Shown one piece after another: positions 15,009-40,799 of a DNA stretch of 64,000 bases. This DNA is from Oopsacas minuta. Taxonomy: Eukaryota > Animalia > Porifera. Within the stretch, counting starts at the first letter, position 1, and each line of letters opens with the position of its first letter. The notes under the pieces were generated by a model. It saw only the letters and a list, made by a program, of their open reading frames with translations. It did no database searches and was not told the DNA's origin. The DNA lies in NCBI GenBank assembly GCA_024704765.1, contig JAKMXF010000133.1, positions 620,001 to 684,000 of the forward strand, in the 5' to 3' direction. Position numbers and translations under genes: made by a program.

Positions 15009-15590
15009 CTAAATCCGGAATTTAGCAACAGAATCAGTTGTATCCACATCCATCTCTGTTGGAGTATCGGCTAATCGTTGTTTAGGTAGTTGCTCTGATT
15101 TTTCAATATACCATTTGGGTGAATAAAGTATTTTATCGCTATTTTGAGAAACAATTGAATATTTTGCTGAATAATCACTGAAATGTTCTTGACAGCAAAC
15201 CATCAGTGATTTATCAATCATTTCTTTATCACATCCAGGTAGTAAACAAATAACAAATCTAGTACTCATGTTAACCTTACGAACACACCATTCATGGAAA
15301 TGTATCAGACAAGCATTAGAACAACAAATACATTGATGAGATGTATCAGGACATGAACACCAATAACAACCAAAGATAGCTTTCTTCCAGTTAACATCAC
15401 TGCAGTAAGAAGAAGCAGGAGAAATTGATGGACCCTGAAGACGAGGAATCTTACCTACATCTGTATGATAGTAGAGGATGGAGAGAAGACGTTCGGAAAA
15501 GGGAATTTCAAAGTCACCTTTAAATGCAGATCTCCAGTAGGATTGAAATTTATTAATAGGACTGGCACTCGTACTGGTACTAGTGGCCAT
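15009..15590 (-). CDS. Array gene g: a single Cys/His module, near-copy of module 1 of array gene G1
   Basis: ORF of 193 aa; FQSYWRSAFKGD...SPKWYIEK is almost identical to the N-terminus of ORF 25227-26519. Confidence 0.7.
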   Translation of the reverse strand: MATSTSTSASPINKFQSYWRSAFKGDFEIPFSERLLSILYYHTDVGKIPRLQGPSISPASSYCSDVNWKKAIFGCYWCSCPDTSHQCICCSNACLIHFHEWCVRKVNMSTRFVICLLPGCDKEMIDKSLMVCCQEHFSDYSAKYSIVSQNSDKILYSPKWYIEKSEQLPKQRLADTPTEMDVDTTDSVAKFRI

Positions 15591-15958
15591 TAATAACTAA
15601 TTTCTGAAAAATATTTAGTAAAGACAGTAGTATCAAAGTACATAACAAAATGAATTGAAAGTCATAATTTGTAGATATGTAACCGTAAGCAAACTGGGCA
15701 CAACTCCCCTAAAAATAGATATACAAGAGATATTTCACCAATTAAACCCCCATAGCCTCTAAAGAACAGCCTTTACATACCATAATCAGCCCAAAACAAA
15801 GGTTTATACAAAAATTAAATAATAGAAAATATTCAAATTTATAAAATTACAATAACAAAGAAGTATAATAGAAAAGTCATTCTCCGATCACAATTATAAT
15901 ATACAGGTATACAATTCTAGAGAATATATTGATACAATAATGAGTATATACATACAAC

Positions 15959-16729
15959 CTAGAGCTGATAAGTATGAGAACTATATGAACTCGGATCTGG
16001 TAATGGATTATCATCAGGTGAACTCTTTGAGAGCTTTTTTCCATTATCAGGACACGTCCGCTTTAAGATTTCAGGATTATTAAGAGAGAATTTTCGTTTT
16101 ATAGATTTCTGGTCTGACAAGCGCAAAGATTTTCCGAAGAATGAAGGGTTTTTGGTTTGATGAACAACTAAAACGGGAGAATTAAGAGGTTTAGTTTGGC
16201 TCTTTATGCTTTGGGGGATTGTCTTGCTAGGCGAATTGGAAATGCCTTGTGGTTTAGATCTGAACTCGAGAGAGGGTGCAAAGCTATTAACTACCTCAAC
16301 ATTCTTAGTGACGTCATTATCAGTAGGGTGAGTCTTTTTCAATTTTCCGAGTTCATTAGCTTCTCTGGCATACTTTTGATTCCATTCAAATTCTAACACC
16401 ATCTTATCCATGGTTTCTTCTTTCATTCCAGTTATTTCTTTCTCTATTTTACCTAAAATATCAGCTTGTAGATTCTTGAAAGTAGAAGAAGAATATAAAT
16501 CCTGATGATACTTCTTCATCTTCTCCAATTCTTTGAATTTTTCTCGTTCATTTCTGAATTCAGAAATAATCGCATCTAATTCTGAGATTAGTTTATTTTC
16601 TCTCGATTGAATAACCTCAATCAGCTGAGAGAAATATGTATGAATTTTAGATCTAACATCGCTTGTCATAGTCTCAAAATCCTCTTTATCAAAGTTTATA
16701 CTAGAACACATTAATTGTACATCTTCCAT
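15959..16729 (-). CDS. Array gene f: coiled coil plus low-complexity tail, no Cys module
   Basis: KIHTYFSQLIEVIQSRENKLISELD...LEFEWNQKYAREANELGKL is shared with the other coiled-coil genes; an AG acceptor lies just before the ATG. Confidence 0.7.
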   Translation of the reverse strand: MEDVQLMCSSINFDKEDFETMTSDVRSKIHTYFSQLIEVIQSRENKLISELDAIISEFRNEREKFKELEKMKKYHQDLYSSSTFKNLQADILGKIEKEITGMKEETMDKMVLEFEWNQKYAREANELGKLKKTHPTDNDVTKNVEVVNSFAPSLEFRSKPQGISNSPSKTIPQSIKSQTKPLNSPVLVVHQTKNPSFFGKSLRLSDQKSIKRKFSLNNPEILKRTCPDNGKKLSKSSPDDNPLPDPSSYSSHTYQL

Positions 16730-16995
16730 TCTACAAACTATAATACAATAACTGCGTAAAATCGCTCAGAAATAAATCAATAATTATTACTAATAGATAA
16801 TGATGTGAACGTAATAAAGATAGAAAAGTTGATAAAAATACGAGAAATTGAGAATAGTACACATTGATATGGAAAGTATAGAATCTATTCAAAGTAGATA
16901 ATACAAAAATAATCAAAATTAGATAAAATAATGTTTTTATTTGTGTGATTACAAATCCTATAAAACGTAGAGTATCTCAACAACTAGCTGTACTT

Positions 16996-18201
16996 CTAAT
17001 ACTTAGAAGATTGACCGGTACGAGCACTGATAGACAGTTTGGGTATTTTGTAGGGAGGAGGAGCTGTAGGAATAGGTGGGTACCTGAATGGCTTACCTTG
17101 AGGGGAAGGTAGAACAGTACAAGAAAGAGCAGACTCTGCAAGCTCTGATAAGTGACTATCTTCATTAGAAGAACAGTCACTGATAATATCACGAATATGA
17201 TAAGATGCATGAAGCGAATTAGTAGATTGATTGCTATCTGATTTAATTTCGCTTAGATTGAAATTAGGTATTGGATCAGATTTTGAAATATTAACAGCAT
17301 CAACTACATTGTAAAAATGTGGGGGTTTGGATATAAATCTAGCAATAGTTTTGCTATAAATTGTTTTGTAATCTGATTCAAGTATTGCTAGATGTGTATC
17401 AGAACAAACATTAGCATTTCCTATAGACAACATTTCACATCCAGGATACATGCATAGAGATTCTCCACAGAATTCATGTAACTTCCTACGACACCATTCA
17501 TGTAGATATTGATAGCATTTCTTATCGCACACATAAATGTACTGATTGGGATTTGTAACTTTTCCACACCAATAACAACCTTCAATCGATACACACCAGT
17601 TTTTGTGATCTGTGAATGTAGACTTCAAATGTTCTTCAAGGTAACTATCTCTAGGAATAGGACCTATATCAGTTTTGTAGATTAGTCCTTCATATAATCT
17701 CTTGGAAAAAATAAATTTATTAAAAGATCTAGATTTCTTGGTTTTGACTTTGTTAATAATAACTGGTTCTGACAAACAAACTGAAGTATTATTAGACACG
17801 AGCTTAAGTTCACCAAACTTGCTTACACTCACAGCATCCTTTGGACTCCATTCAAAATCAACACTCAAAGTTTGCTTATCCTCTTCTTCAATTTCAACCA
17901 GCTCTGACTTGATATGAGATAATATATCAATTTGTAATGACCTGACTGTTGAAGAGGAATACAGGTCCTCATGGTATCTTTTTAACTTCTCCAATTCGTT
18001 GATTTTATCTCTTACTTTAACTCGTTTTAGCCTGTAACGAGATAGAATCTCATCCAATTCTGAGATTAGTTTATCTTGTCTCATTCTAATTATATCAATC
18101 AGCTGTGAGAAGCATGTCTGTATTTTAGATCTCACATTACTGGCAATAGTTTCAAAATCTTCTTTATCAGAGTTTAATCTAGAAGAATTCAAATCTTCCA
18201 T
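16996..18201 (-). CDS. Array gene e: coiled coil + Cys/His module + tail with PTAPPPY
   Basis: ORF of 401 aa; the coiled-coil motif is followed by FSKRLYEGLIYKTDIGPIPR...GCYWC...HEWC...CMYPGC...CSDTH. Confidence 0.8.
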   Translation of the reverse strand: MEDLNSSRLNSDKEDFETIASNVRSKIQTCFSQLIDIIRMRQDKLISELDEILSRYRLKRVKVRDKINELEKLKRYHEDLYSSSTVRSLQIDILSHIKSELVEIEEEDKQTLSVDFEWSPKDAVSVSKFGELKLVSNNTSVCLSEPVIINKVKTKKSRSFNKFIFSKRLYEGLIYKTDIGPIPRDSYLEEHLKSTFTDHKNWCVSIEGCYWCGKVTNPNQYIYVCDKKCYQYLHEWCRRKLHEFCGESLCMYPGCEMLSIGNANVCSDTHLAILESDYKTIYSKTIARFISKPPHFYNVVDAVNISKSDPIPNFNLSEIKSDSNQSTNSLHASYHIRDIISDCSSNEDSHLSELAESALSCTVLPSPQGKPFRYPPIPTAPPPYKIPKLSISARTGQSSKY

Positions 18202-18572
18202 TCAATCGCTAGAATACTAGGAATATGAATAAGCATAGACTCTGTAATAGTGTAAATTTATGGTTCCTAAGGACAAGGTTACTTGCAAACACCTACAAAT
18301 AATTCTGTCTACTGACGACGTCAACATGGCCGTGGGAGACGGTCCGGTTGGTCAGATAGGAAACTGTCTGCTACGGGACTGCGATAATGTATGCATTTTA
18401 ATTAATGACGGAACATATATTGTATACATATATAAGCGATCTATAAGTCTAATGTATAATGTGACATAACACAATAATTGTAAGCATAATAAACTTAAGA
18501 TTAACTATTCCATCGTTAACAAACCGTGCCGGTTTTATGGATTTTGAGCGGATAATATAGAGGGGGAATTAT

Positions 18573-19616
18573 TTATTTAAACAGATTCTTTAGTTTTGAA
18601 GGAGATTCTGTGTTAGTAGATTGCTTAGACAACCTATCATAAGCTGAGATGGGAGATATGTCTGTATTGCTTGGGACAGCTTGTGGAATATCAGCTCTAT
18701 GAAAGAATGAAGTAATTTTCTGGTTAGTTGGATCCTTTTTATACCAATGAGGAGTCTTAAGTTCTATCTTACCTGTAAATACATTAAGAATAGTTTTGAA
18801 ATTTCTTTCAAGATCAAGATGATGAGATTCTGAACAAAACTTAACATCTTCTTGTGACGATATTTCACATCCAGGATACATACATAGAGATTCTCCACAA
18901 AATTCATGTAACTTTACACGACACCATTCATGTAGATATTGATAGCATTTCTTATCACACACATAAATGTACTGATTGGGATTTGTAACTTTTCCACACC
19001 AATAACAACCTTCTATTCGTACACGCCAGTTAGGGAAATTAATGAATCTTGCCTTACTATATTCTTCACAGTAACTATCTCTAGGAATAGGACCTATGTC
19101 TGTTTTGTAGATTAATCCTTCATATAATCTCTTGGAAAACGTATGTAAACCCCAGTCTGTACGCTTTATTGTGACGTCACTCCCTTCACCAGTTGTATAA
19201 AGTCTCTCATTAGGAATTTGTGTTAATTTCCCAATTTCATTGGCTTCCCTTGCGTATTTTCTATTCCATTCAAACTCTACAGTTATAGAACTCATTTGTT
19301 TTAATACAGTCAATTCAGATTCAATCTTATTCAATACATCACAATGTACATTACCAACTACAGTAGAAGTATATAGCGAACTTTCATGATACTTTTTCAT
19401 CTTCTCCAATTCATTAATCTTATCTCTATTCTTGATTCTCTCTTGTCTGTAGTGAGATACAATCCCATCCAATCCTGTGAGTAGCTTTTTTCGTCTTTCT
19501 ATAATTACATCAATCAAGTTAGTGAAATATGTCTGAATCTTGGATTTAATATTACTCGCATTTAGCTCAAAATCATTATCATCAAAGTTAATGCTAGAAC
19601 TCATTATATCTTCCAT
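18573..19616 (-). CDS. Array gene d: coiled coil + Cys/His module (probable start MEDIMSS at 19616)
   Basis: The ATG at 19616 aligns with paralog starts; the module is near-identical to module 2 of G1. Confidence 0.8.
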   Translation of the reverse strand: MEDIMSSSINFDDNDFELNASNIKSKIQTYFTNLIDVIIERRKKLLTGLDGIVSHYRQERIKNRDKINELEKMKKYHESSLYTSTVVGNVHCDVLNKIESELTVLKQMSSITVEFEWNRKYAREANEIGKLTQIPNERLYTTGEGSDVTIKRTDWGLHTFSKRLYEGLIYKTDIGPIPRDSYCEEYSKARFINFPNWRVRIEGCYWCGKVTNPNQYIYVCDKKCYQYLHEWCRVKLHEFCGESLCMYPGCEISSQEDVKFCSESHHLDLERNFKTILNVFTGKIELKTPHWYKKDPTNQKITSFFHRADIPQAVPSNTDISPISAYDRLSKQSTNTESPSKLKNLFK

Positions 19617-19734
19617 ACTACCAGTATAGAAATGATCTATATTATAAACAGAGAAAGAGATAAATAACCAGGTAAGAGACTGGCAAGCGAGTGGCAAGTG
19701 AGAACAGTGCACCATTAAAGTGGTAAGTGGAGTA

Positions 19735-19760
19735 ATATATATATATATATATATATATAT
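19735..19760. repeat. (AT)n microsatellite
   Basis: 13 AT units upstream of gene d. Confidence 0.9.
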
Positions 19761-19885
19761 CTGATTAATAATAAAATAGAAGAAGTATTATAAACTAGAA
19801 ATTTAGTTGGTTCAGTTACATAACACCATATTTACCGCGTAATAAAACAAGCACTTCTTCCTTTGTTTGAGTCTCGCCTGCTCCA

Positions 19886-19947
19886 ACAATGGTCACCCTA
19901 ATAATCACTCAAGTAATACCTTGAGTGATTATTATGGTGACCATTGT
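19886..19947. repeat. Fold-back inverted repeat with ~28-bp arms and a 6-nt loop
   Basis: ACAATGGTCAC...TAATAATCACTCAAG-TAATAC-CTTGAGTGATTATTA...GTGACCATTGT, with one mismatch. Confidence 0.85.
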
Positions 19948-20297
19948 CCAGGTTTTAGCTGTCCAATTTCTACATGTTTACATGCCAATTTGAGTTCTAT
20001 TGTATTGTGTCATTTGTATGAAATGTATAACAAATACAATTCGTAATTATTCGTTGGTAATATATTTGGGGATCATTAAAATAAAATAAATGGTCAGATC
20101 CTGGTCTGATATACAACAATCTTGAACTCAATAATTATTAATACTACAAGTATATTTAATAAAGTGATACAAAAATGAAATACGAAAGCGATTAATAAGC
20201 ATAAATAATTATAATTAGTATAAATAATATATTAATAATTCTTTAAAATAAGGGAAATATTCTGTAGAAATAAATGTGTCATGAATTAGTTCGGGAA

Positions 20298-20957
20298 CTA
20301 TTTCTCAGTTTCTTTACGTTTTGGCAGAATATTAATACAATCATAGTGCAACTTTCGTTTAACAGATTGTTTGGTTACAGTTTCCTTTGAAACAGTGCGA
20401 GAAGATCTTGGATAAGTATCAGAATTCATTGGGAATATCTTTTCAGTATATTTATAGTATGATCTGCCTTGTGTATTAGACTTGCTGACAAGTGACGTAG
20501 GGGATGGTGTCCTAATGCCCTGAGAACAAACAGGACTATACACGGGGTATTCAGAATTAACTTTAACCTTTCCGATTTCATTAGCATATTTGGCATAACC
20601 TTTAGTCCATTCAACATCAATAGTCAATATATCTGAATGCTTCTGCTGTAATTCAGATAATTCAGTATTACATCTATCTAGAACTGCATCATGTAGTCCT
20701 TTCACACTCGAAGAAGTATAATTATCTTGATGGTATTTCCTCATCTTTTCCAATTCATGAATCTTCTCTCTAATTCTAAATCTCTCTAGACCGTAATGAG
20801 ATACAATCTCATCCAATTCTGAGATTAGTTGAGTTTGTCTGTGTTGAATACTTTTAATCAGCTGAGAGAAATAAGTATTTAATCTAGATTTAATATCTTC
20901 AACTTCCTGTTTAATATCTTTATCCAAGTTTATTTTGAATTTGAATATCTCTGCCAT
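20298..20957 (-). CDS. Array gene c: coiled coil plus short tail
   Basis: RLNTYFSQLIKSIQHRQTQLISELD...IDVEWTKGYAKYANEIGKVKV. Confidence 0.7.
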   Translation of the reverse strand: MAEIFKFKINLDKDIKQEVEDIKSRLNTYFSQLIKSIQHRQTQLISELDEIVSHYGLERFRIREKIHELEKMRKYHQDNYTSSSVKGLHDAVLDRCNTELSELQQKHSDILTIDVEWTKGYAKYANEIGKVKVNSEYPVYSPVCSQGIRTPSPTSLVSKSNTQGRSYYKYTEKIFPMNSDTYPRSSRTVSKETVTKQSVKRKLHYDCINILPKRKETEK

Positions 20958-21293
20958 GCTATAATAATCTGTGAGAATTTATTACAGATAATTAAATCAT
21001 AGGTGGACATCAAACTTGAGCTTAACAGCTAGTAATTATTTTAATGACTAGCATCGGGCCGCAACTAAGCTTTGAGCCGCAAAAAAGTAACATGTGAGAG
21101 TCAAAACAATAGAAATATATAACACAATGAAAGAATACTAAAATTGGTAATAACAAAATACTAAAACAACTAGTCATTTCAGAGACAATAATCAGGGCAG
21201 TAATATGATGATAAGTCATTAAGAAAGAAATAGTATAGAAACTTTCATCAGAACAATCCACGTAAGGATTAGAGTAACCATACTAGCTAGAGG

Positions 21294-22353
21294 TTATGTA
21301 ATCTTGGATAAGTGTGGAACTAACTGATTAGGAGAACCAAATTTCTTATACCATTTGGGACTTATTTTGGACCTTCTTTCAGTATCATCAATTTTATTAG
21401 CCCTATACATCTCGCCTATATTAGTAGTATGGTCTCTGTTACAACACTTGAAACCATCAGAAGCTTTCTTAGGACATCCAGGATATTGACAGAATTGTAT
21501 TTAGAACGGACTGTACTTTAACTCTACACCACTCATAGAATATTAAGTAACAACGTAAACGACAAAAATATTTATTATTCAATTCATTTAATGTGAATGT
21601 TCCACAGTTGTAACAGCCTTTTATATCAGCTGACCAGTTGGGATAATGAGAAAATTTGGAAGTAAAAGTCTTTAATTCCAAACAATCACGAGGAATAATT
21701 CCAATATCTGTACGTAAAGTAATTAGTTCTTGCAATTCTTTTGGAAAATCACTTTGAAAGAGAGTTACCGAGATTTTATTTCCATTAGGTTTTGAGTTAG
21801 AAGCAATCTTGGACTGATTAAGTGAAGAATGATAACTGTTTGATTTCACATGCGAAGTAGGAATATTGTCATTAGAGGAATTACTATTCGAGGCATTACT
21901 GTTATGTAAGTTATCACTAACAGGTAAAATGTTACTTGATAATGATGATGAGGGAGATAGATAATCATTTGTTTTCAATTTACCGAGTCCACTAGCTTCT
22001 CTAGCGAACTTTTGATTCCATTCAAATTCTAGAATGAGTGAATGATTTTTTCGTAAGTTAGCTAATTGTGGTCCAATCCTACTTATTACATCATCTTGTA
22101 CATCTTTAACGATAGAAGATGAATACATTTCACAAGGAAATATATTAATCTTCTCCAACTCATTGATTTTCTTTTCTTCCTGTCTCTTACGATATATAAT
22201 CTCATCTAATTCTGAGATTAGTTTAGTTCTTCTGAGTTTAATAACCTCAATCAGCTGAGAGAAGTAGGTCTGTATTTTAGTTCTAACATTATTCGCCATT
22301 GTTCCAAAATCTTCCTTATCAGATCTACTGCTAGAAATTTTCTGATCCGCCAT
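21294..22353 (-). CDS. Array gene b: coiled coil + Cys/His module, frameshift at about 21500 (pseudogene or consensus error)
   Basis: ORF 21469-22353 ends mid-module; the shifted frame continues QFCQYPGCPKKASDGFKCCNRDH...ISPKWY...SKIT* to 21294. Confidence 0.7.
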
Positions 22354-22644
22354 TCTAGAAAATTTAGCTAGAAATTACAAGTAAAGTATTGGAGAAATGA
22401 TATCATGCTTTCCTATAAGGTATAATCTGTGTAGAGCAGCCCCATGTACATAACTGCCAATTTGGGTTCTATTCTACGTATGTGAATGTGTAACAAATTG
22501 TGAACATTCACACACGTACAATATTTGTAGAATTTCGCTGGTAATAATTTCGAGAACATTTAAATAAATACAAAAAACAGCAATCTAGAACTCAATAATA
22601 TAAGTAAACTTAAGGAAATATAACAGACCAACTAACGATGATCT

Positions 22645-23406
22645 TTAAAGCTCAAATTTTGTCTGAGTAACTGTGTCAATATGGCCAGTCCTATCAGGTC
22701 TGTCAGCTCCATCAGCTCGATAAATAGGAGCTGAGTATCCTTCTATACATACACGTTTTGCAGAAGTGTGTTTTGAGTACCCAGGATTGTAAGGAGGCGG
22801 TCTAACTTGTTTAAAAGATTGATTATCAGTGAATTTATCTGGGGAAATATCTGTATAACGTTGATAGTTAGGACTAGCTTGAATTGAAGCAATGGATTGT
22901 TCATTAGATTTAGATTTCGAACTGATTTCATGACCACCATCCCTAGAAGTGGAAGGGAATATCTTGCTAGACCTAGGAGTAGTACTGAACTCAGAAATTT
23001 CAGTTTTAACCTTTTTGTTCAAAATCGTAGAGAATGAGCGTATATTAAATTTTCCGATTGCACTTGCTTCTCTTGCATACTTTCTATCCCATTCAAATTC
23101 TATAAACACTGTTGAGTTTTCGCGTAATCTAGCCAATTCAGATTCTATGTCACTCAATTTCCTATCAGAATGCGTATAGCTCCTCTCTTGATTACTTCTC
23201 TTCAGCTCCAATTCTTTCATCTTATCTTGCTCTTGTCTGTAGTGAGTTATAACCTCACTTAATTCTGATATCAGTTCTATTCTTCTGAGCTTAATGACTT
23301 CAATCAGTTGAGAGAAATAAGTATGGATTTTAGTCGCTATTTTAACTGCTTCTAATTCAAAATCTTTCTGATCGGATTGTATACTAGAAGTGAGGATTTC
23401 TGCCAT
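22645..23406 (-). CDS. Array gene a: coiled coil + tail with RPPPY (probable start MAEILTS at 23406)
   Basis: KIHTYFSQLIEVIKLRRIELISELS...IEFEWDRKYAREASAIGKF; an AG lies immediately before the ATG, as in paralogs. Confidence 0.7.
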   Translation of the reverse strand: MAEILTSSIQSDQKDFELEAVKIATKIHTYFSQLIEVIKLRRIELISELSEVITHYRQEQDKMKELELKRSNQERSYTHSDRKLSDIESELARLRENSTVFIEFEWDRKYAREASAIGKFNIRSFSTILNKKVKTEISEFSTTPRSSKIFPSTSRDGGHEISSKSKSNEQSIASIQASPNYQRYTDISPDKFTDNQSFKQVRPPPYNPGYSKHTSAKRVCIEGYSAPIYRADGADRPDRTGHIDTVTQTKFEL

Positions 23407-23608
23407 TCTACACAATACTAAATAAATACATATATGGACATGCGACAATACTACGTTAATATTGAATTGAGGAGAAATCAGAATGATAGGGTCGTGAGTA
23501 ACAAATAGTATTACTACAGTCAACAGATTGCTTTCATTCAATTTAGCAATTTGTACTATAAGGGGAAATGGAAATATTTTATGAACATTGATTCAAACAC
23601 AAATCGTA

Positions 23609-23758: not shown

Positions 23759-23902
23759 TATTTTGAATTGCAATATATGGAATTCTTGATACTAAATTAG
23801 CTATGTATATGATTAATAATATCAAAAGCAAGAACAAGCAACATCTGTATTTAGCAAACAAATAGATATTTGTATATGATTGGCTAACACATCCAACAAT
23901 AA

Positions 23903-26519
<2,617 letters not shown>

Positions 26520-29915: not shown

Positions 29916-30473
29916 AAAACAACTCCTACATAACATAGAAACCTGTATATCACGACTGCTCTATAATTATTGGTCCCATGTACATAGCTATTATACATGT
30001 AAAGTACACGTGGGAGCACTTTCTCTTGTGATTTTCAGACGCCTGAATCAGGATATTTAAAAGGTCTAAAAATTTCAAGCCCCAACTATATTTTTGTTTC
30101 AAACGATATGCATATAGGAGAGAGTCCAGTGCTCCTAGATAAACCCTGCAATAACAGTCACTTATCTACAGTCATACCGGTTTATTTCGCAGTATGATGT
30201 ACCCATATTTACCTACCAATTGTACTACATCACGACCTATTTTGATCCTCTGATAGTAGATAGAATCAAATAGGGTGTATACCAGGGGTCGGCAACTGCG
30301 GCCCGAAAAACATTTTCATGGCCGGCCGAAGAATGGGCTACAACCTTATTATATTACCATAATATTCTACTTACGTATATATTCATTGATAGCATTAGAA
30401 ATCTGCTCATCACTTTCATAAATTTTCCAACACAAAATATTCCTTTTCAATACCTACTTTTTTATTTGTTATA

Positions 30474-31806
30474 CAGGGTGTATCATAAATGCTGTCGTGT
30501 AGTAACAATATTCATATAGTAACGGATTGTATTACAACCTTAATTAGAATTCAATTTATTATGCAGTATCGTAAAGTATTACGTTAATGCTATCTAAAAC
30601 AATACTTAGCTACTTTGGGCTGATCGTATTTCTTAGAAAATTTTTTCACATTGACGCTCCTTGATATATTCGGAAAATGAATGTTAAAGATTATGGTTTG
30701 GAAATCCGTAATCAAGCTATTGGCATGCTAAAGGCTGGCATGACCCAGAAAGACGTAGCTATAAAGCTCCAAGTTAGTTTGAGATCAATCGAACGGTGGT
30801 GGCGCAAGCAGAAGCTCGGAAATCTCAAAAAACTGTAGCCCATCCTGGGAGGAATACGAGTGTACAAAAGGCCGCCAAAATTATAATTTCGAAATCTCTC
30901 GGAAAAGATACAAATCTACTAGGAAATTGGCTGATATAGTGACCTCAAGGGGCTATCCTATACCGCATTCGACCGTTCATCGTTATCTTCAGGATAATAT
31001 TGGCGCGAAATCTTACAAAAGGCCGCGATTGACGGAGAAAATGAAGGAAAAACGACTCAAATTTGCAGAATCTCGCAAAGAATGGACTGTCGAAGATTGG
31101 AAACAGGTATTGTGGTCTGATGAAGCACCCTTTCAATTGTTCAATACTCCAAACCGACAGAACGATCGGGTTTGGGCTAAAAATTCAGACAATGTTGAAC
31201 CTTGCGTTCAAGTTAAATTTCCAGGGAAAATTCATGTCTGGGGCATGATGTCCCATCGAGTTGTCTCTGAACTCCATATAGTGCCTCCAAAACAGACAAT
31301 AAATGGTTGCTACTATCGGAACTATATTTTGAATAAAACCTGTAAGGATGCAATAGAACGCGACTCAGAAAATGGGACAATATTACAGCGATCAATGCTC
31401 TCAGATATGTCCAGTTTTATTTTATGCAGGATGGTGCTCCAGCACACTGCAAATTTGACTCAGTCCTTGTGTGAAAAGAATTTCCCAAAGTTTTGGATGA
31501 AAGAAGAGTGGCCAGGAAACTCGCCCGACCTCAATCCTATTGAGAATCTATGGTCTATTCTGAAAGATAGCGTCAGCCAAATGGAGAATATGACGAAGCT
31601 GGACCATTTAATTTCTCAAGTAAAAAAGGCTTGGGAGGGCATTGATCCAAAATTTTTAGAAAATTTAGTAGCAAGTATGCCTAATAGGACTAGATCAGTT
31701 ATAGAATGCGATGGAGATTACATAAATAAATAATTAGCTTAAACGATCCACTTTTTTGTGTTTTGAGATATTTCCTAGAACCCGACAATAATTATGATAC
31801 ACCCTG
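30474..31806 (+). mobile_element. Tc1/mariner-superfamily DNA transposon, 1333 bp, defective
   Basis: TIRs CAGGGTGTATCATAA-x-TGTCG at both ends, TA TSDs, internal transposase. Confidence 0.9.
30677..31733 (+). pseudogene. Frameshifted Tc1-like DDE transposase
   Basis: The HTH start MNVKDYGLEIRNQAIGML..VAIKLQVSLRSIERW has shifts near 30820 and 30905. VLWSDEAPF and SPDLNPIENLW are present; the QDGAPAH motif is readable only in a shifted frame near 31425-31445. Confidence 0.9.
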
Positions 31807-32244
31807 TACAATATTTTCATTAGATTACGAAACGATTAAACTCCATCACTATCCTACCATCATGTCCATTTGTAGTAGTAGCAAGAAAAGAAAAATTGAC
31901 TCTGAATAGATACATCAATTCTTTCAAGGACTTTGGTAGAATTAGTGGATATTCACCATATATGTACATCAACAAATAGTCATCTAGTGGCCAGCACATC
32001 TATGAAAAGAGTTTATATGGCCCGCACTCAAATAAAGTTGCTGACCCCTGGTGTATACGATATATAGAAAACCTATTAAAAGCATAGAAGTATACAATTT
32101 AACAAAATAATATTACTATACTACATCACTATACGTATACGGGGATATAAGGAATACCAGAAAAGATCAGGAAACAACTAAAAGATGTAACTGTTACACA
32201 GATTGTATACCTGGGCAATGTATAAATATTTATTGAATAGTTCA

Positions 32245-35118
32245 TCAATTCACGTCCGCGTCCGTTTCCATGTCTTCATTGTCACTGAGAGGGAGTGGTG
32301 TGCTTTCAGGACTGAGATCAGTGTTCCTATTCTTAACATCAGATAAACGGAAGTTAATCTGAATGCTATTATCTATAGGCATACCGACGTCTCCAGAAGC
32401 TTTCGGAATAGAGGGTCGATTAGCTTGAGTTTGGACCGAACAATTCGGCTGCGTTAGAGAGTTTTCTTCAGTGAGAAATGGATTAATTTTATCGGTGTTG
32501 GTTTCTGTCATATCAACATCACTGGAATTATCATGTAAAAATGGATTATTAACATCTTTACTGATATCAGTGGTATCAGGTGTATTGGGAATGGTGGATG
32601 ATGAGTCTGAACCTTGAGAAAACTGAAAAGGGTTATTATAATCAAGATCCAAATCGCGTTTTGCTTTACCAACTTCAAATAATGGTCCATCTGTAGCACT
32701 AGCATTACAAGCTACAGTTTGTTCTGGAGGATTAATAGGCGGTATAACTTGTGCTGGTATTTGAGTTAGACTGTCTCCTTGAGATGATGTTTGTGGAGCG
32801 TAATTCGTGGATAGGGGTGATGCATTCAAATTGATTAGATCTTCAGTGCAGGAATTCGTTGTATTACTTTTAGTTCGAGCAACTCGTGTTTCACTAATAT
32901 GCATAGGAGATTGTATAGAGGATTGAGGTAGAATATTATTCTCATTCATATTGGATTGTGATGGAATAATCTGTGTATTGCTGGAATTTGTAGGGGCAAA
33001 ATTTATGGGCACAAAATCCTTCATTTGAATTGGTTGAAACGTATTTAACATTGGTTGCTGTGAGCATTGTAATTCTGTTCTAACAACCATCAACAGTTCT
33101 CCTAACTTATTCATACCTTTCCCATCCCCACCATCTCCCCAGAACTTATCATTCTTCGTGTGCTCAAATATAAGCTTTTCACCAGTCCTAATCAATATCT
33201 GAGCAAGATCTATATTTTGATTGAATTTACATCTCAATGCTTTTAACATAACCTGCATTTTAATTTTTGGCCAATTAGTTCGAACCCAGCGCTGTACACC
33301 AGGATTTCTAGAGAAATCAAATGCATCTCTTGGAGCTTGGAGCTGACTAACGAAATATACATAAGGAGTTCCAGCAAACTTACAAGCTTGAAAATAATGC
33401 TCAGTTGTTGGCCATATCATATTATCAATCACAAGGTTGCTACATGGATAGAAATTAGTCAGCTCATAAAATGGTTCATTTCTGTTATAGAAATTGATAG
33501 GTGTTAGGCTATAATCATGATACCATCTGGGTCCAAGTGCGAACTCAGTACTCTTCAAGAGATGAGAATACTGATTGAATCGCTCATACTCTTTTGAATG
33601 AGTACGATTACAACAGTCAAATCCATAAGCTGATGGAAACTTGCAACCCATTACTCTACATAGTTTCTTTTTTGAAGTATTTGTGTACAAACAGTGGACC
33701 CATTCATTCAGCAGAAATATACATCTGTCAGAACATGTGATACAGTTCATGCGGAGCTGGTTTGTACAGCACCAATAGCAAAGAGGAATATCAACATTCC
33801 AATTCGGATTAGGAATATTATTCATCATGGGAATAAATTGGATTAATTTTCTGGGAATTGGACCTACGTCTTGGAAGTAATATAAGAACTCAGTTAACTC
33901 CCATGAAAATACACAGTGTTGTAGACCTGGTGATGGAGAATACTGTTTCGGTGGAGTGGATTGTTGCGGAACTGCTGGTGGAGAAACTGGATTTTGAGAA
34001 TGATTGGCATTTACTCTTTGATTATTGACTCTGTTAACATCAGGGATATCACGTTTTTTATACCAGTCTGGTCCTATGGCTGTTAATCTTTCACTGTCTA
34101 TTTTCCTGACTTGGCTATACTTTTCTTTTATAGCTATTGTATGTTCTCTGCTACAACAATCAAAACCATCAGCTGCTGTCTTATTACAACCTGTATTCCT
34201 ACACATATTAACACCAGTAAGGGAACAAACTTTACTCCTACACCATTCATAGAAAATTAAGTAACAGCGATATCTACAGAAATTGTCATTTCCTATAGAT
34301 TTGTTACCACACCAATAACAGCCTTCTATCTGTCTCAACCAGTTAGGAGAGCTAGAGTAAGGAGAAATTAGATGATTTTCATTTGGCTTTGTTCTTGGAA
34401 TTATACCAATGTCTGTTTGGAATATCATTGCGTTGTGTAGATCTATTGGGAATTCCATTATTTGATCAAAATTAGCAGATGTATCATTGGTCTTGTTCTT
34501 ACCATTTCCTTGGGACTGTATTTTCTGTTTAGGTGGTGGCTTAGTGATCTGAGAAGTTGAATTCGAAATTTGTTGAAGGGGTACATTAGATAATCCTCCA
34601 TTAGAACAATACCAAGAAGGTCCTTCTCTAATAACTGTCTTCAAGAGAATCTTATGATCTGAACCTTTAGGAAATTCTGAATCATAATATCCGTTATGTT
34701 TAGTACCACAATACAAATGATTATCTTTTGTATTTGTATCACAACCAGGGAATCTACAGAACCTTCTATTAGTAAAGTAATGAACTCTCTCAACACACCA
34801 ATCATGTAGATAGAAGAAACATTCTTTAGTACAACATATTCCATTATAATCAGTGTTATCATCTTTACACCAGTAACAACCATCTATTTGTTTGTTCCAA
34901 TTATTTGAATGAAAATATTTAGGGTTATCTCCTGCTGTATTAAGCTTAAATCCACGAGGAATACAACCTACATCTGTTTCATAACAGAGAGTGTTTAAGA
35001 GTCCTTCGAAGAATTGTATTACTTGTCCACTGATTGATACTGGAATAAATGTATCTTTACAGAAACTTGCCCAATACATGAGAAATGGACCCCATCCAGT
35101 TCTAGAATCGGATGCCAT
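32245..35118 (-). CDS. Array gene G3: three Cys/His modules + NADAR + tail with three NPF motifs, 957 aa
   Basis: Intact ORF; NADAR at about 33070-33500 with TTEHYFQACKF and EHTKNDKFWGDGGDGKGMNKLG. Confidence 0.9.
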   Translation of the reverse strand: MASDSRTGWGPFLMYWASFCKDTFIPVSISGQVIQFFEGLLNTLCYETDVGCIPRGFKLNTAGDNPKYFHSNNWNKQIDGCYWCKDDNTDYNGICCTKECFFYLHDWCVERVHYFTNRRFCRFPGCDTNTKDNHLYCGTKHNGYYDSEFPKGSDHKILLKTVIREGPSWYCSNGGLSNVPLQQISNSTSQITKPPPKQKIQSQGNGKNKTNDTSANFDQIMEFPIDLHNAMIFQTDIGIIPRTKPNENHLISPYSSSPNWLRQIEGCYWCGNKSIGNDNFCRYRCYLIFYEWCRSKVCSLTGVNMCRNTGCNKTAADGFDCCSREHTIAIKEKYSQVRKIDSERLTAIGPDWYKKRDIPDVNRVNNQRVNANHSQNPVSPPAVPQQSTPPKQYSPSPGLQHCVFSWELTEFLYYFQDVGPIPRKLIQFIPMMNNIPNPNWNVDIPLCYWCCTNQLRMNCITCSDRCIFLLNEWVHCLYTNTSKKKLCRVMGCKFPSAYGFDCCNRTHSKEYERFNQYSHLLKSTEFALGPRWYHDYSLTPINFYNRNEPFYELTNFYPCSNLVIDNMIWPTTEHYFQACKFAGTPYVYFVSQLQAPRDAFDFSRNPGVQRWVRTNWPKIKMQVMLKALRCKFNQNIDLAQILIRTGEKLIFEHTKNDKFWGDGGDGKGMNKLGELLMVVRTELQCSQQPMLNTFQPIQMKDFVPINFAPTNSSNTQIIPSQSNMNENNILPQSSIQSPMHISETRVARTKSNTTNSCTEDLINLNASPLSTNYAPQTSSQGDSLTQIPAQVIPPINPPEQTVACNASATDGPLFEVGKAKRDLDLDYNNPFQFSQGSDSSSTIPNTPDTTDISKDVNNPFLHDNSSDVDMTETNTDKINPFLTEENSLTQPNCSVQTQANRPSIPKASGDVGMPIDNSIQINFRLSDVKNRNTDLSPESTPLPLSDNEDMETDADVN

Positions 35119-35438
35119 TATTGCAAAGCAAAAAATCTAGAATAGACAACATATAGAATAGATAATATGATCTAAGTACATACAGAACAGGGAACGCCTG
35201 CAAACCACTAACGTAACCTTGGCACATTACCAACAGGGTCAGGAGCGGATCCAAGAAAGAGCTAGGTCTGGGAGAGAGTATATAGTAAAGCGTGAAATTA
35301 CAATTTACATTCATGTACCATGGAATGGTGGAATTAGTATGGATGTAGCAGTATAAAAGTAACAATTGCCAGCCTGATCAATTTATAACTCGAAGAAATA
35401 GTACAAGTAAAAGCTTCTCGATTAATGTGGTGGAGACT

Positions 35439-35546
35439 CAGAGGCGTAGCTAGGGTCGCATGATGGATGGTGCGGCATAAGTGTGGCAAAGTAGTAGGTA
35501 CAGTTGCGGAATGTGACGCAGGTGCTGCACCCTGGCTACTTCTCTG
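35439..35546. mobile_element. Small GC-rich MITE, possibly PIF/Harbinger-type
   Basis: Imperfect TIRs CAGAGGCGTAGCTAGGGT and CAGAGAAGTAGCCAGGGT; TSD not clear. Confidence 0.45.
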
Positions 35547-35721
35547 GGTATAATAATTATTTGGTGGTTCAGAATACTCATTGCACAGGGACGTAGCGAG
35601 GGGAAATTATTGAGTACTTATCCTATAGTTTATATCTTCACGAGTTCAGGCGCAATAGAAAGTAAATAAAATGTATAAAAATAATAAATTCATCTGGCAA
35701 AATAAAATTACAAACTTAAGT

Positions 35722-38134
35722 TCAGTAATCTGAATCACTGTCATCAGATGAAGAATACAGTTGGACTTTTCTAAGTGATGTTATATCTGTATCTGATGTA
35801 ATATCTTCTGTAAGAGAAGCTTTTGACACAATTTTCAAATTAGGAACTTTCGGTAAAGAAACAAATGAAACATCAATACTGTTATCAGAATAAAACTGAT
35901 TAGATTTGAATCCTTCCCTTATACCAACCAACATATCTCCGAGAGAACTATCTCTACAAACAAGAGGTCTCATCCCTGTCATAATTAACAATCCTCTAAG
36001 TATACTGTTCTGTTGAAACTTAGCCAAAACACCTTTGTAAATTGTTTGTTCTAAGATTCTCTCCCAATCTGGTCTCACCCATTTCTCACAAGTTCTTCTC
36101 TTCATCCATCTCTCCAACTCACTAACACATTCCATACGACAGATACGGTTGCTATAAGGAGTTCCAACCAACTTCTGAGCACATAAATAATGATACACAC
36201 TAGGCCAAATAGATCCTTGTATAAACAATAGAGAAGGGAAATATATAGAAAACTCATAGAAAGCACCTGTCCTGGAGAAATGAATGGGAGATAAATCAGA
36301 GTACCACTTCGGTCCGAGAATCAATTCAACTTCTTCTTCTATGTTCAATGATAAATTCCCTCTCAATTCAGAGATATCCTTAATATGCTCTAAACTACAA
36401 CATACACAACCAGCAGCTCGCGAATTCTCACACCCAGGTAATACACATAACTTAACTCCACACGACGTCTCCAGTTTTCTAACACACCATTCATGAAACA
36501 GTAACCAACATCTTTTACCACAGGTTAACCCGTGGAAACTAGTGTTATTCAATTCACACCAGTAGCAGCCTGTAATCTCCATTCTCCAGTTATTATGTGT
36601 AGAGTATTCACTAGCTTGTTGATTGTAGCTGTTACGAGGGATAATACCAACATCAGTGTACTGAGCTAACAAGTTAGTTAGCTTACGAGATAATGTGAAG
36701 GGATATACCACAGGTAGATTCATATTATTAGATTCTTGGATATAATGTAGAAATGGATTCTGTGGTAATCCGAGTTCTTTCTTCGAATAAATACTGCTGT
36801 CAGTTTCCAAAGTATGAAGATGATCTTGTGTAATTGGTTTAGTAGACTTGGTAAATGTTGTACTAGGATGTGGCATATTGTATGACGTAATATTGTTGTA
36901 TATGTCTGTTGATAAATTAGCTCCTTGTTTTGAAGTAGAAATAGTTTCTAAGAAAGGATTATTATAATCAGAGTTCATAGTTATGTCAAGTTCAGTAGAA
37001 GAATTATTTGTTACTTTAATATTAGATTGATTATCAACTACTATTGGCTGTTGAGGAATCTTTGAAGATAAATGTATAGAATTCTGTGAGGAGTCAGATT
37101 CTTTGTACCAGTGAGGTCCTGTTAATCCTTCACTGTGTATTATCCTGACTTGGCTATACTTTTCTTTTATAGCTATTGTATGTTCTCTGCTACAACAATC
37201 AAAACCATCAGCTGCTGTCTTATTACAACCTGTATTCATACACATATCAACACCAGTAAGGGAACAAACTTTACACCTAGACCATTCATAGAATATCAAG
37301 TAACAGCGATATCTACAGAATGCATTTCCCTCAGACGTAGGTATTTCCGATTTGCGACCACACCAATAACAGCCTTCTATCTGTCTCAACCAGTTAAGAG
37401 AGCTAGAGTAAGGAGAAATTAGATGATGTTCTTTCAGGGGTGTTCTTGGAATTATACCAATGTCTGTTTGGAATATCATTGCGTTGTGTAGATCTATTGG
37501 GAATTCCATTATTTGATCAAAATTAGCAGATGTATCATTGGTCTTGTTCTTACCATTTCCTTGGGACTGTATTTTCTGTTTAGGTGGTGGCTTAGTGATC
37601 TGAGAAATTGAATTCAACATTTGTTGAAGGGGTACATTAGATAATCCCCCATTAGAACAATACCAAGAAGGTCCTTCTCTAATAACTGTCTTCAAGAGAA
37701 TCTTATGATCTGAACCTTTAGGAAATTCTGAATCATAATATCCGTTATGTTTAGTACCACAATACAAATGATTATCTTTTGTATTTGTATCACAACCAGG
37801 GAATCTACAGAACTTTCTATTAGTAAAGTAATGAACTCTCTCAACACACCAATCATGTAGATAGAAGAAACATTCTTTAGAACAACATATTCCATTATAA
37901 TCAGTGTTATCATCACTACACTAGTAACAACCAATTATTTGAATGAAAATATTTAGTTTTATCTCCTGCTGTATTAAGCTTAATTCCACGAGGAATACAA
38001 CCTACATCTGTTTCATAACAGAGAGTGTTTAAGAGTCCTTCGAAGAATTGCATTTTTTGACCACTTAATCCAAATAATGCCTCTTTAGAGTATGTTATCC
38101 AATAGCAGAGAAACGGCGTCACTTCAGAGGCCAT
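35722..38134 (-). pseudogene. Array gene G4: three modules + degenerate NADAR, disabled in module 1
   Basis: A 17-bp deletion relative to G5 at about 37931-37939, plus TGG>TAG at 37921-37923 in GCYWC. The rest of the frame is open to 35722. Confidence 0.85.
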
Positions 38135-38351
38135 TATATCTAATGATTCTAATCAGTGGCAAAAATAAATATAAATTAACCAAAAAAGGTGCTCTACACA
38201 ATTATTGTTATTATCAAAAGTTGCAAAATATATAAAAATAACGTGATAAAGATAAACAGCGAAATATAGTGTATCTCCACCTATTAAATACTAACTGGAC
38301 TATATGAAATGAAAGATACAGTGATGTCATGGGACTAGAGAATCATCATCG

Positions 38352-40799
38352 TCAATTTGAGACATCTGACCATGAATCTGAATCAAAATAATCAGATGAA
38401 GAATAATGTTTAACTTTTCTAGGAAGAATACCCATACCTTTCTGTATTTTAACTCCACCTGTACTAGAAGCTTTTGACCCAATTTTCAAATTAGGAACTT
38501 TCGGTAAAGAAACAAATGAAACATCAATACTGTTATCAGAATAAAACTGATTAAATTTGAATCCTTCCCTTATACCAACCAACATATCTCCGAGAGAACT
38601 GTCTCTACAAACAAGAGGTCTCATCCCAGTCATAATTAACAATCCTCTAAGTATACTGTTCTGTTGAAACTTAGCCAACACAGCTTTGTAAATTGTTTGT
38701 TCTAAGATTCTCTCCCAATCTGGTCTCACCCATTTCTCACAAGTTCTTCTCTTCATCCATCTCTCCAACTCACTAACACATTCCATACGACAGATACGGT
38801 TGCTATAAGGAGTTCCAACCAACTTCTGAGCACATAAATAATGATACACACTAGGCCAAATAGATCCTTGTATAAACAATAGAGAAGGGAAATATATAGA
38901 AAACTCATAGAAAGCACCTGTCCTGGAGAAATGAATGGGAGATAAATCAGAGTACCACTTCGGTCCGAGAATCAATTCAACTTCTTCTTCTATGTTCAAT
39001 GATAAATTCCCTCTCAATTCAGAGATATCCTTAATATGCTCTAAACTACAACATACACAACCAGCAGCTCGCGAATTCTCACACCCAGGTAATACACATA
39101 ACTTAACTCCACACGACGTCTCCAGTTTTCTAACACACCATTCATGAAACAGTAACCAACATCTTTTACCACAGGTTAACCCGTGGAAACTAGTGTTACT
39201 CAATTCACACCAGTAGCAGCCTGTAATCTCCATTCTCCAGTTATTATGTGTAGAGTATTCACTAGCTTGTTGATTGTAGCTGTTACGAGGGATAATACCA
39301 ACATCAGTGTACTGAGCTAACAAGTTAGTTAGCTTACGAGATAATGTGAAGGGATATACCACAGGTAGATTCATATTATTAGATTCTTGGATATAATGTA
39401 GAAATGGATTCTGTGGTAATCCGAGTTCTTTCTTCGAATAAATACTGCTGTCAGTTTCCAAAGTATGAAGATGATCTTGTGTAATTGGTTTAGTAGACTC
39501 GGTATATGTTGTACTAGGATATAGCATATTGTATGATGTAATATTGTTGAATATGTCTGTTGGTAAATTAGCTTCTTGTTTTGGAGTAGAAATAGTTTCT
39601 AAGAAAGGATTATTATAATCAGAGTTCATAGTTATGTCAAGTTCAGTAGAAGAATTATTTGTTACTTTAATATTAGATTGATTATCAACTACTATTGGCT
39701 GTTGAGGAATCTTTGAAGACAAATGTATAGAATTCTGTGAGGAGTCAGATTCTTTGTACCAGTGAGGTCCTGTTAATCCTTCACTGTGTATTATCCTGAC
39801 TTGGCTATACTTTTCTTTTATAGCTATTGTATGTTCTCTGCTACAACAATCAAAACCAGCTGCTGTCTTATTACAACCTGTATTCATACACATATCAACA
39901 CCAGTAAGGGAACAAACTTTACTCCTACACCATTCATAAAAAAATAAGTAACAGCGATATCTACAGAATGTATTTCCCTCTGAGACAGGTGTTTCCGATT
40001 TGTTACCACACCAATAACAGCCTTCTATCTGTCTCAACCAGTTAAGAGAGCTAGAGTAAGGAGAATTTAGATGATGTTCTTTCAGAGGTGTTCTTGGAAT
40101 TATACCAATGTCTGTTTGGAATATCATTGCGTTGTGTAGATCTATTGGGAATTCCATTATTATAGATTTATCATCGGGCATATTCTTAACAGTATTTTGA
40201 GTCATATTTTGTTTTCGGAATCTCTTAGTGCTTTGGGAAGTTGAATTCATAATTTGTCGAAGAGGAACATTAGATAATCCTCCATTAGAACAATACCAAA
40301 TAGGTCCTTCTCGAATAACTGTCTTTAATAGAGACTTATGATCAAATCCTTTAGGCAATTCAGACTCAAACTTTGCTTTGTGTTTCGTATCACAATATAA
40401 ACTATTATCTTTATTTGTATCACAACCAGGGAATCTACAGAACCTTCTATTAGTAAAGTAATGAACTCTCTCAACACACCAATCATGTAGATAGAAGAAA
40501 CATTCTTTAGTACAACATATTCCATTATAATCAGTGTTATCATCTTTACACCAGTAACATCCAATTATTTGTTTATTCCAATTATTTGAATGAAAATATT
40601 TAGGTTTATCTCCTGCTGTATTAAGCTTAAATCCACGAGGAATACAACCTACATCTGTTTCATAACAGAGAGTGTTTAAGAGTCCTTCGGAGAATTGTAT
40701 TTCTTGTCCACTGATTGATACTGAAATAAATGTATCTTTACAGAAGCTTTCCCAGTACTTGAGAAATGGGCCCCATCTAGCTCTAGGATCGGTTGCCAT
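38352..40799 (-). CDS. Array gene G5: three Cys/His modules + degenerate (pseudo-)NADAR (probable start MATDP at 40799)
   Basis: Intact ORF of about 815 aa; the NADAR-like segment at about 38555-38940 reads PSVYHYLCAQKL and WVRPDWE..AKFQQN and lacks FWGDG. Confidence 0.85.
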   Translation of the reverse strand: MATDPRARWGPFLKYWESFCKDTFISVSISGQEIQFSEGLLNTLCYETDVGCIPRGFKLNTAGDKPKYFHSNNWNKQIIGCYWCKDDNTDYNGICCTKECFFYLHDWCVERVHYFTNRRFCRFPGCDTNKDNSLYCDTKHKAKFESELPKGFDHKSLLKTVIREGPIWYCSNGGLSNVPLRQIMNSTSQSTKRFRKQNMTQNTVKNMPDDKSIIMEFPIDLHNAMIFQTDIGIIPRTPLKEHHLNSPYSSSLNWLRQIEGCYWCGNKSETPVSEGNTFCRYRCYLFFYEWCRSKVCSLTGVDMCMNTGCNKTAAGFDCCSREHTIAIKEKYSQVRIIHSEGLTGPHWYKESDSSQNSIHLSSKIPQQPIVVDNQSNIKVTNNSSTELDITMNSDYNNPFLETISTPKQEANLPTDIFNNITSYNMLYPSTTYTESTKPITQDHLHTLETDSSIYSKKELGLPQNPFLHYIQESNNMNLPVVYPFTLSRKLTNLLAQYTDVGIIPRNSYNQQASEYSTHNNWRMEITGCYWCELSNTSFHGLTCGKRCWLLFHEWCVRKLETSCGVKLCVLPGCENSRAAGCVCCSLEHIKDISELRGNLSLNIEEEVELILGPKWYSDLSPIHFSRTGAFYEFSIYFPSLLFIQGSIWPSVYHYLCAQKLVGTPYSNRICRMECVSELERWMKRRTCEKWVRPDWERILEQTIYKAVLAKFQQNSILRGLLIMTGMRPLVCRDSSLGDMLVGIREGFKFNQFYSDNSIDVSFVSLPKVPNLKIGSKASSTGGVKIQKGMGILPRKVKHYSSSDYFDSDSWSDVSN

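Follow-up and report, generated by a model that had tools for sequence, protein, structure and literature searches.

NADAR domains, including those of the YbiA type and those of eukaryotes, hydrolyse guanine-ADP-ribose on DNA, and the N-terminal extension that adjoins their active site differs between clades and has been proposed to bind single-stranded DNA (ssDNA) (PMC11543638, PMC11125620). Most NADARs are free-standing, and the basis of their specificity in vivo is an open question (PMC11543638, PMC11125620). That these enzymes erase ADP-ribose from DNA bases is itself a recent finding, and arrays of YbiA-type NADARs that carry triple modules would offer a natural system for the study of NADAR targeting and of base ADP-ribosylation in animal-microbe conflict. 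Such an array lies in the 64-kb stretch of Oopsacas minuta DNA analysed here (the window), where a cysteine- and histidine-rich module of ~134 amino acids (aa) occurs 19 times. With moderate confidence, and on the basis of sequence patterns and structural models, this module is read here as a lineage-specific two-zinc recognition domain that would target YbiA-type NADAR hydrolases.

From 40.8 down to 23.9 kb of the window, five genes share the order module 1, module 2, module 3, NADAR and a long tail rich in Ser, Thr, Asn and Gln. In the NADARs of G. lovleyi and P. nicotianae, the N-terminal extension is a variable element directly before the YbiA-like core and has been proposed to serve substrate binding (PMC11543638); in the sponge proteins, module 3 takes the place of this extension, at a fixed spacing. 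The two differ in kind, since the described extensions consist of short helices and strands without metal, whereas the sponge element is a 134-aa predicted two-zinc domain with two more copies upstream. From the PxWY motif of the last module to the FYEFSN motif of NADAR there are 13-17 residues (mode 16) in 49 of 49 proteins, a fixed spacing which indicates that module 3 and the hydrolase form one unit; the stretch from one module to the next can be anywhere between 17 and 423 residues long. Of 42 full-module representatives, 19 have NADAR as their partner, as do all 39 matches of a search restricted to proteins of 525-1671 aa. The NADAR of gene 27069-29936 aligns over its full length with E. 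coli YbiA at ~50% identity (2b3w, E 2.7e-37). This sponge domain, at 27891-28313, is far closer to YbiA than to the eukaryotic NADAR of P. nicotianae (E 1.8e-11), a closeness that could reflect a bacterial origin.

Predicted fold and zinc sites

The original prediction had been unable to assign the module to a known domain. As a whole it still cannot be assigned: no Pfam family, PDB sequence match or structural match was found, and profile and Foldseek searches returned no confident full-length match to a characterised domain. Pfam searches with the whole array proteins gave nothing over the module at E<=1, and those with 81 isolated zinc cores gave only scattered sub-threshold matches, to PHD_NSD in 12 cores, C1_2 in 11, DUF2116 ('probable treble clef') in eight, zf-HC5HC2H in eight and CxC6 in four. 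In profile searches of the PDB, the best E-values (0.02-0.04) fell on the PHD fingers of Pygopus and BRD1, and chance matches to lysozyme were equally good. Structure searches with the whole module and with the core, by Foldseek against PDB and BFVD and by VIA-align against 48,161 chains, yielded nothing above noise. Among the weak structural neighbours, the zinc-binding domain of Rtr1/RPAP2 (4fc8, 5c2y, 7b7u) repeatedly ranked first or nearly first, for the module model and the core model alike, and Rtr1/RPAP2 proteins use a Cx4C...Cx3H ligand pattern; membership of that family was rejected, as neither a sequence nor a fold match to the Rtr1 domain was obtained. The module is not described in Pfam, the PDB or the literature searched, and papers on fungal ADP-ribosylation, the O. 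minuta genome and the Cfp1 RID zinc finger make no mention of it. UniProt labels the O. minuta proteins only as 'NADAR domain-containing protein', and a paralogue outside the window (P0057, GenBank KAI6656997.1) is listed as 'hypothetical protein LOD99_16298 [Oopsacas minuta]'.

In agreement with the earlier expectation of one compact fold, AlphaFold2 builds the module as a single domain from only 16 paralogous sequences, with a predicted local distance difference test score (pLDDT) of 89.7 and a predicted template-modelling score (pTM) of 0.85; the zinc core modelled alone, from 81 sequences, reaches a pLDDT of 90.3. The model of the whole module has helices at residues 5-14, 38-41, 64-81, 106-115 and 121-130 and a small hairpin at 57-61, and both models show the same order of knuckle, hairpin and long helix. 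By these models, the module is a real protein domain that is predicted to fold on its own, and it represents a clean case of a confidently predicted fold with no Pfam or PDB relative. Its anatomy would begin with an N-terminal helix bearing FSxxLxxxL, followed by a near-invariant TDxGxIPR loop, a variable loop and a conserved NW. The predicted first zinc site would comprise the CYWC knuckle, a variable hairpin and a CxxxC that opens the long helix, which also bears EW(C), and the predicted second site a CxxPGC knuckle, a variable loop and a CxxxH that opens another helix. A variable helical region closed by GPxWY would complete the domain.

The two zinc sites proposed earlier, CxxC...CxxxC and Cx4C...Cx3H, are well sustained by conservation. 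The counts that follow, and the tree discussed below, are based on 86 distinct full-length modules, made up of search matches and window copies. The eight residues concerned are 95-100% conserved in this set, with C47, C50, C62, C66, C87, C92 and C103 at 99-100% and H107 at 95%, the other four modules having Asp. Eight conserved ligands imply two metals; zinc 1 would be held by C47, C50, C62 and C66, and zinc 2 by C87, C92, C103/104 and H107/108. Position 71 is H in 51 modules (59%), N in 21, Y in 11, S in two and I in one, and position 74 is C in 75 (87%) and otherwise L, I, V or S, so that it looks like a buried hydrophobic position. The best reading of the arrangement is a pair of treble-clef-like fingers that follow one another on a single helical scaffold, and not a PHD/RING cross-brace, because the knuckle-hairpin-long-helix order typical of the treble clef surrounds the first four ligands and is repeated around the last four, because the last four ligands form a finger that exists alone elsewhere, and because the PHD-specific ligands are dispensable. 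We infer both zinc binding and this site topology from the alignments and the models.

A likeness of the first finger to FCS/MYM/TRASH fingers had also been suggested, and it holds at the motif level. The module shares the spacing CxxC-x11-CxxxC (99-100% conserved), some copies contain a literal FCSxxC, and the model has a knuckle, a hairpin and then a helix starting at the third and fourth ligands. At the family level, however, no zf-FCS, MYM or TRASH match was obtained in Pfam, and the invariant flanks NW, YW and EW of the module have no counterpart in these fingers. The sub-threshold matches to DUF2116 reach a best E of 1e-4, and the FCS finger 2w0t appears in the Foldseek list at E 7.9, which is noise level.

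The second finger taken alone qualifies the earlier verdict, since it fits a finger type that is already known, if poorly characterised. A search of 1.84 billion representative proteins with the module profile gave 54 matches at E<=0.001, 43 of which hold full or truncated modules, while ten cover only profile positions ~78-115, three to seven times per protein. These ten repeat proteins carry 35 copies of a 24-residue finger, C-x2-PGC-x10/11-C-[SC]-x2-H, and hhalign relates the sponge core to them with a probability of 97.5% (E 5.6e-12). In turn, the profile of the finger repeats matches yeast Spp1 (6j2p) at E 0.003, in the zinc finger located after its PHD domain. In Pfam, two of the repeat proteins score above the CxC6 (PF18721) cut-off, over the C-terminal half of that family, unlike the sponge proteins themselves, which lie below every Pfam threshold. 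The Cx4C-x10/11-Cx3H fingers of Spp1 (6j2p, 6ven), of the Acytostelium repeats (GAM29034.1) and of this CxC6 half have their ligand spacing and their PGC and CSxxH signature in common with the module; the match concerns only module residues ~85-112, about 30 of 134. Whereas the small finger is a tandem repeat in the protist proteins, it stands as a single copy inside a larger fold in the sponge module. By sequence, then, the module is built from a known zinc-finger class, and one finger of the two is of a type already on record. The Spp1 finger is reportedly named C3H and said to support H3K4me3 binding. The RID finger of Cfp1 is not the counterpart of the Spp1 match but a different site.

Because finger 2 occurs alone as a three- to sevenfold repeat in unrelated proteins, it would be expected to bind a metal of its own. 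Its repeats are fused to a PARP catalytic domain in one protein (P0045, from the slime mould Acytostelium), to NADAR in another (P0052) and to ankyrin repeats in a third. From the PARP and NADAR fusions it follows that this finger type accompanies ADP-ribose writers and erasers in three distant eukaryotic lineages, and the module thereby ties an obscure C3H finger to ADP-ribose enzymes. The protist protein P0052, assembled in Logan contigs, starts with a signal-peptide-like segment and combines four Cx4C...Cx3H fingers with a NADAR; it represents a second, independent finger-NADAR fusion.

Lineage distribution and evolution

Full modules occur only in glass-sponge-type assemblies, on large eukaryote-type contigs in at least five ENA assemblies, and the arrays found there are of the same kind (e.g., 12 modules in 23 kb or 18 in 24 kb). 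In two of these assemblies the arrays are flanked as in the window, with PSMD8/TMEM214/AAA/Sas10 on one side and PAQR/HMG-CoA synthase/TAF6 on the other. Among the relatives is a transcript assembled with Trinity from the glass sponge Vazella pourtalesii (EukProt EP00800), and the module family is therefore expressed in that lineage. On present data, glass sponges (Hexactinellida) are the only lineage that has the module. The possibility that it came from bacteria, viruses or a transposon was considered and rejected, as no supporting match was found outside eukaryote-type contigs. In one related contig (ENA ERZ26869290, L005, 1-11364), two module-NADAR genes of 682 and ~965 aa form a perfect-looking inverted pair, that is, a genic palindrome with two plus-strand followed by two minus-strand elements whose lengths agree.

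The view that the module is a mobile domain was confirmed in several ways. In the array it stands by itself, in groups of three ahead of NADAR or behind a coiled coil, and a 2102-aa ankyrin protein of a relative ends in one module. A maximum-likelihood tree built from the 86 modules traces the solo copy back to position 1 of a three-module gene, and the copies joined to a coiled coil back to position 2. This tree contains a position-1 clade of 30 rows and a position-2 clade of 30 rows, with Shimodaira-Hasegawa-like approximate likelihood ratio test (SH-aLRT) values of 93 and 94, while the position-3 modules make up 26 rows in two groups; each position clade holds several genomes. The three-module block thus arose before the genes duplicated and the species diverged, and one of its members cannot stand in for another. 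The module of the coiled-coil gene at 19 kb is the sister of module 2 of the 26-kb gene, and the solo open reading frame (ORF) is a near-copy of a module 1; together with the position-2 type of the coiled-coil modules, this amounts to domain shuffling within the array. The ankyrin-module protein (ENA ERZ20067936, L002, 3001-9309) is the only fusion seen besides those with NADAR and the coiled coil.

Pairwise identity among the window copies is only 30-50%, so that they are diverged paralogous domains and not a recent repeat. The variation is unevenly spread. Column entropy is 0.6-1.5 bits in the scaffold (positions 15-22, 39-50, 62-75, 87-92 and 131-134) and 3.0-3.2 bits in four hypervariable segments (23-38, 51-61, 93-102 and 109-130), two of which are finger tips. 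The ratio of nonsynonymous to synonymous substitution rates (dN/dS) is 0.18-0.35 in older pairs, which indicates that the domain has a function and is under constraint, and 0.4-1.3 in recent paralogues. In the variable columns, dN/dS is usually above that of the scaffold and rises to 1.4-1.7, on small counts. To judge from these alignments, the loops of the module are free or driven to change.

Candidate functions

We infer every functional assignment of the module from the features described above. It would act as a non-catalytic recognition unit, of which three non-equivalent copies place the NADAR hydrolase on its substrate. Module 3 would constitute an outsized N-terminal extension of NADAR, located on the side of the proposed ssDNA-binding element, whereas modules 1 and 2 would be further readers on flexible tethers. 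Four hypervariable loops on an invariant zinc scaffold could give each paralogue its own specificity, and the solo and coiled-coil-fused forms, the latter presumably dimeric, might serve as enzyme-free adaptors or as competitors for the same ligand. This ligand is likely to be a nucleic acid that carries a modification, or else one of the components of an ADP-ribosylation conflict. A bolder proposal, which we regard as speculative and fairly unlikely, sees an innate-defence-like family in which a hypervariable two-zinc sensor is mounted on antitoxin-type NADARs, the paralogues are directed to particular ADP-ribosylated nucleic-acid targets or to bacterial or viral ADP-ribosylating toxins, and the coiled-coil and solo forms act as decoys or adaptors. 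If true, it would provide an animal counterpart of bacterial DarT-NADAR conflict systems. The module is limited to one lineage, is made of a known zinc-finger class and has a predicted function, and its interest lies chiefly with the ADP-ribosylation field and with sponge biology.

Several observations weigh against a targeting role of this kind, or against parts of it. The assignment of ligands to sites is founded on conservation, on the order of secondary structure and on the autonomy of finger 2, not on geometry, and variants are too few for linked loss of ligands across modules to settle it. The dN/dS values are noisy and do not amount to proof of positive selection. Outside sponges, the link of the finger to PARP or NADAR involves only two of ~10 proteins, and word-indexed searches with residues 1-190 of P0045 and residues 30-175 of P0052 returned only the queries; the former was probably swamped by low-complexity words, and the census of the small finger relies on the search of representative proteins. 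The modules are also near neutral (net charge -1 to +7, isoelectric point 6.5-8.9), which offers no argument for unspecific nucleic-acid binding, and two NADARs of the window are degenerate, which means that catalysis is not always the point. This near-neutral charge, together with the fusions to a coiled coil and to ankyrin repeats, keeps a pure protein-protein role alive.

In its most explicit form, that role would have the module assemble proteins within an expanded, immune-like family of scaffolds, much as the B-box and TRAF fingers do in TRIM and TRAF proteins, with a ligand unrelated to ADP-ribose and NADAR as one of several cargoes. Treble-clef fingers often bind proteins. The joining of the module to a TRIM-like coiled coil and to the 2102-aa ankyrin protein would suit such a scaffold, as would the near-neutral charge and the tandem, fast-evolving arrays with their pseudogenes. 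NADAR is by far the dominant partner, however, the constant spacing of 13-17 residues at which module 3 precedes NADAR suggests that the two work together as a unit, and in distant eukaryotes fingers of the finger-2 type are again found alongside PARP and NADAR, all of which leaves this explanation a serious but fairly unlikely one. It is improbable, too, that the module itself reads ADP-ribose or poly(ADP-ribose), in the manner of PBZ, in place of the macromolecule that carries it. The co-occurrence of finger 2 with a writer (PARP) and an eraser (NADAR) in three lineages would be in keeping with such a reader, and a ligand pocket could be lined by D16, R22, N39 and E72, which are polar and invariant; yet the PBZ, WWE and macro families gave no match even at E<=1, and hypervariable loops fit poorly with an invariant small ligand.

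A different rival concerns the zinc sites, and takes the core as a divergent PHD-type cross-brace joined to a C3H finger, on the pattern of the Spp1/CFP1 N-terminal domain; the module would then read histone tails or other peptides and bring NADAR to chromatin. The ligand spacing CxxC-x11-CxxxC-x4-H-xx-C-x12-Cx4C agrees with the C4HC3 order, Spp1 combines a PHD finger with the same small C3H finger, and the weak similarities include profile matches to the Pygopus and BRD1 PHD fingers (E 0.02-0.2) as well as the sub-threshold Pfam matches to PHD_NSD, zf-HC5HC2H and C1_2 listed above. The defining His is nevertheless present in only 51 of 86 modules and the next Cys in 75, the Cx4C and Cx3H pairs are autonomous elsewhere and so not free to complete a PHD site, and the model shows a 19-residue helix in place of a short strand. 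Nor did a PHD structure appear in any fold search, the best PHD-type Pfam matches (E 0.023-0.025) lie below the cut-offs, and lysozymes score equally well in the PDB profile search. On the strength of ligand conservation and of the autonomy of finger 2, the PHD interpretation was set aside as unlikely. Least probable of all, and hardly credible in our view, is that the array is decaying or selfish DNA, either mobile-element cargo or pseudogenes, whose module lacks a host function. Two frameshifted copies, a gene split by a microsatellite frameshift, a Tc1/mariner remnant within the array and the lack of introns might be cited in its favour, but 17 reading frames are intact, dN/dS is well under 1 for old pairs, position-specific clades and flanking genes have been kept across several genomes, and a related species transcribes a member. 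The two-zinc recognition domain that targets NADAR hydrolases is thus retained as the preferred interpretation.

Layout of the array and its surroundings

The window, which is animal DNA, has a guanine plus cytosine content of 33-37% and contains long ORFs without introns. Its module copies had been counted as 19, and a regular-expression scan and a profile hidden Markov model scan in all six frames recovered exactly 19, all on the minus strand between 15108 and 40700, with no further copy elsewhere in the 64 kb. The count needs one refinement, in that two of the copies are broken by frameshifts; the other 17 are uninterrupted and score 133-172 bits against the family profile (domain E 1e-40 to 1e-52). 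The earlier consensus was also reproduced, with 20 invariant columns in an alignment of 16 copies (A1): D16, G18, I20, P21, R22, N39, W40, I44, C47, Y48, C50, C62, C66, W73, C87, C92, C104, H108, P132 and Y135.

Among the five NADAR genes, all on the minus strand, three have strong Pfam matches to NADAR (E ~1e-30 to 1e-32), while two carry degenerate versions. Gene 38352-40826 contains copies 1 (40293-40700, profile positions 1-134, 153 bits), 2 (39756-40157, 158 bits) and 3 (38952-39350, 151 bits) at positions 1 to 3, the last directly before a degenerate NADAR-like domain at 38607-38900, which matches PF08719 with only 40 bits over profile positions 31-121. Copy 4, at 37660-38053, is one of the broken ones: its first part (profile positions 1-41) is encoded at 37928-38053 and the rest, from position 50 to 134, in a different frame at 37660-37920, with the frame change at 37920-37928 and the loss of positions 42-49, including the first Cys of CYWC. 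In gene 35722-37767, copies 5 (37105-37509, 160 bits) and 6 (36301-36699, 151 bits) occupy positions 2 and 3, and the degenerate NADAR-like domain, at approximately 35893-36290, is 90% identical there to gene 38352-40826. Gene 32245-35118 has copy 7 at position 1 (34609-35019, 160 bits), copy 8 at position 2 (34060-34458, 167 bits) and copy 9, a QDVGPIPR variant, at position 3 (33520-33915, 142 bits), followed by a NADAR at 33067-33492 (PF08719, E 2.8e-30). In gene 27069-29936, position 1 is held by copy 10 (29424-29828, 161 bits), which is the copy modelled above, position 2 by copy 11 (28944-29336, 149 bits), which has the exact FCSxxC motif, and position 3 by copy 12 (28341-28736, 133 bits); its YbiA-type NADAR matches PF08719 at E 1.9e-32. 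Between two NADAR genes, inside the array and on the opposite strand, lies a remnant of a Tc1/mariner-type transposase with the Pfam domains DDE_3 and HTH_Tnp_Tc3_2 (30927-31733, plus strand).

The last NADAR gene is split. ORF 25227-26519, with copies 13 (26049-26447, 154 bits) and 14 (25521-25925, 172 bits) at positions 1 and 2, and ORF 23903-25204, with copy 15 (24830-25240, position-3 type) before a NADAR at 24374-24802 (PF08719, E 6e-32), are halves of one ancestral three-module gene. Copy 15 is separated from copies 13 and 14 by a frameshift in a (CAA)n tract of ~200 bp at 25230-25440 on the minus strand, which encodes poly-Gln; a TTAA interruption near 25340 turns the reading to poly-Thr and then to a stop. 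This interruption may be genuine damage, a trace left by a transposon or a mistake in the assembly.

From 23.5 down to 16.0 kb follow six genes (15959-23541, minus strand) that open with one common TRIM-like coiled-coil domain of ~130 aa, for which the Pfam TRIM_CC match stays below threshold (E 0.013-0.1). Three of them continue into a single module. Gene 21348-22353 carries copy 16 (21348-21750), the second broken copy, with one frameshift near 21497-21499, between profile positions 83 and 85; gene 18573-19715 carries copy 17 (18741-19145, 170 bits) and gene 16996-18201 copy 18 (17311-17715, 166 bits), both of position-2 type. The coiled-coil genes at 15959-16729, 20298-20957 and 22645-23541 have no module. 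Copy 19 (15108-15506, 156 bits) is the sole domain of a 193-aa ORF at 15009-15590 and is 97% identical to copy 13.

The coiled-coil domain of the array genes also opens a protein at 53721-55040 on the plus strand (BLASTP E 6e-6) that has a long tail of Arg/Gly/Asp-rich repeats. It matches, more weakly (E 0.005), a coiled-coil protein at 12272-12967 on the minus strand whose C-terminal part is NHL-like by eye. These similarities suggest that the domain is a widely reused oligomerisation module in Oopsacas minuta. Housekeeping genes of the window encode an SLC6 transporter, TAF6, HMG-CoA synthase, PAQR, PSMD8, TRAPPC3, CHMP1 and a CDC25-like phosphatase. Two overlapping ORFs at 51203-51725 on the minus strand read (ISI/IHH)n from a long trinucleotide-type repeat, which is in all probability a microsatellite that codes for no protein.

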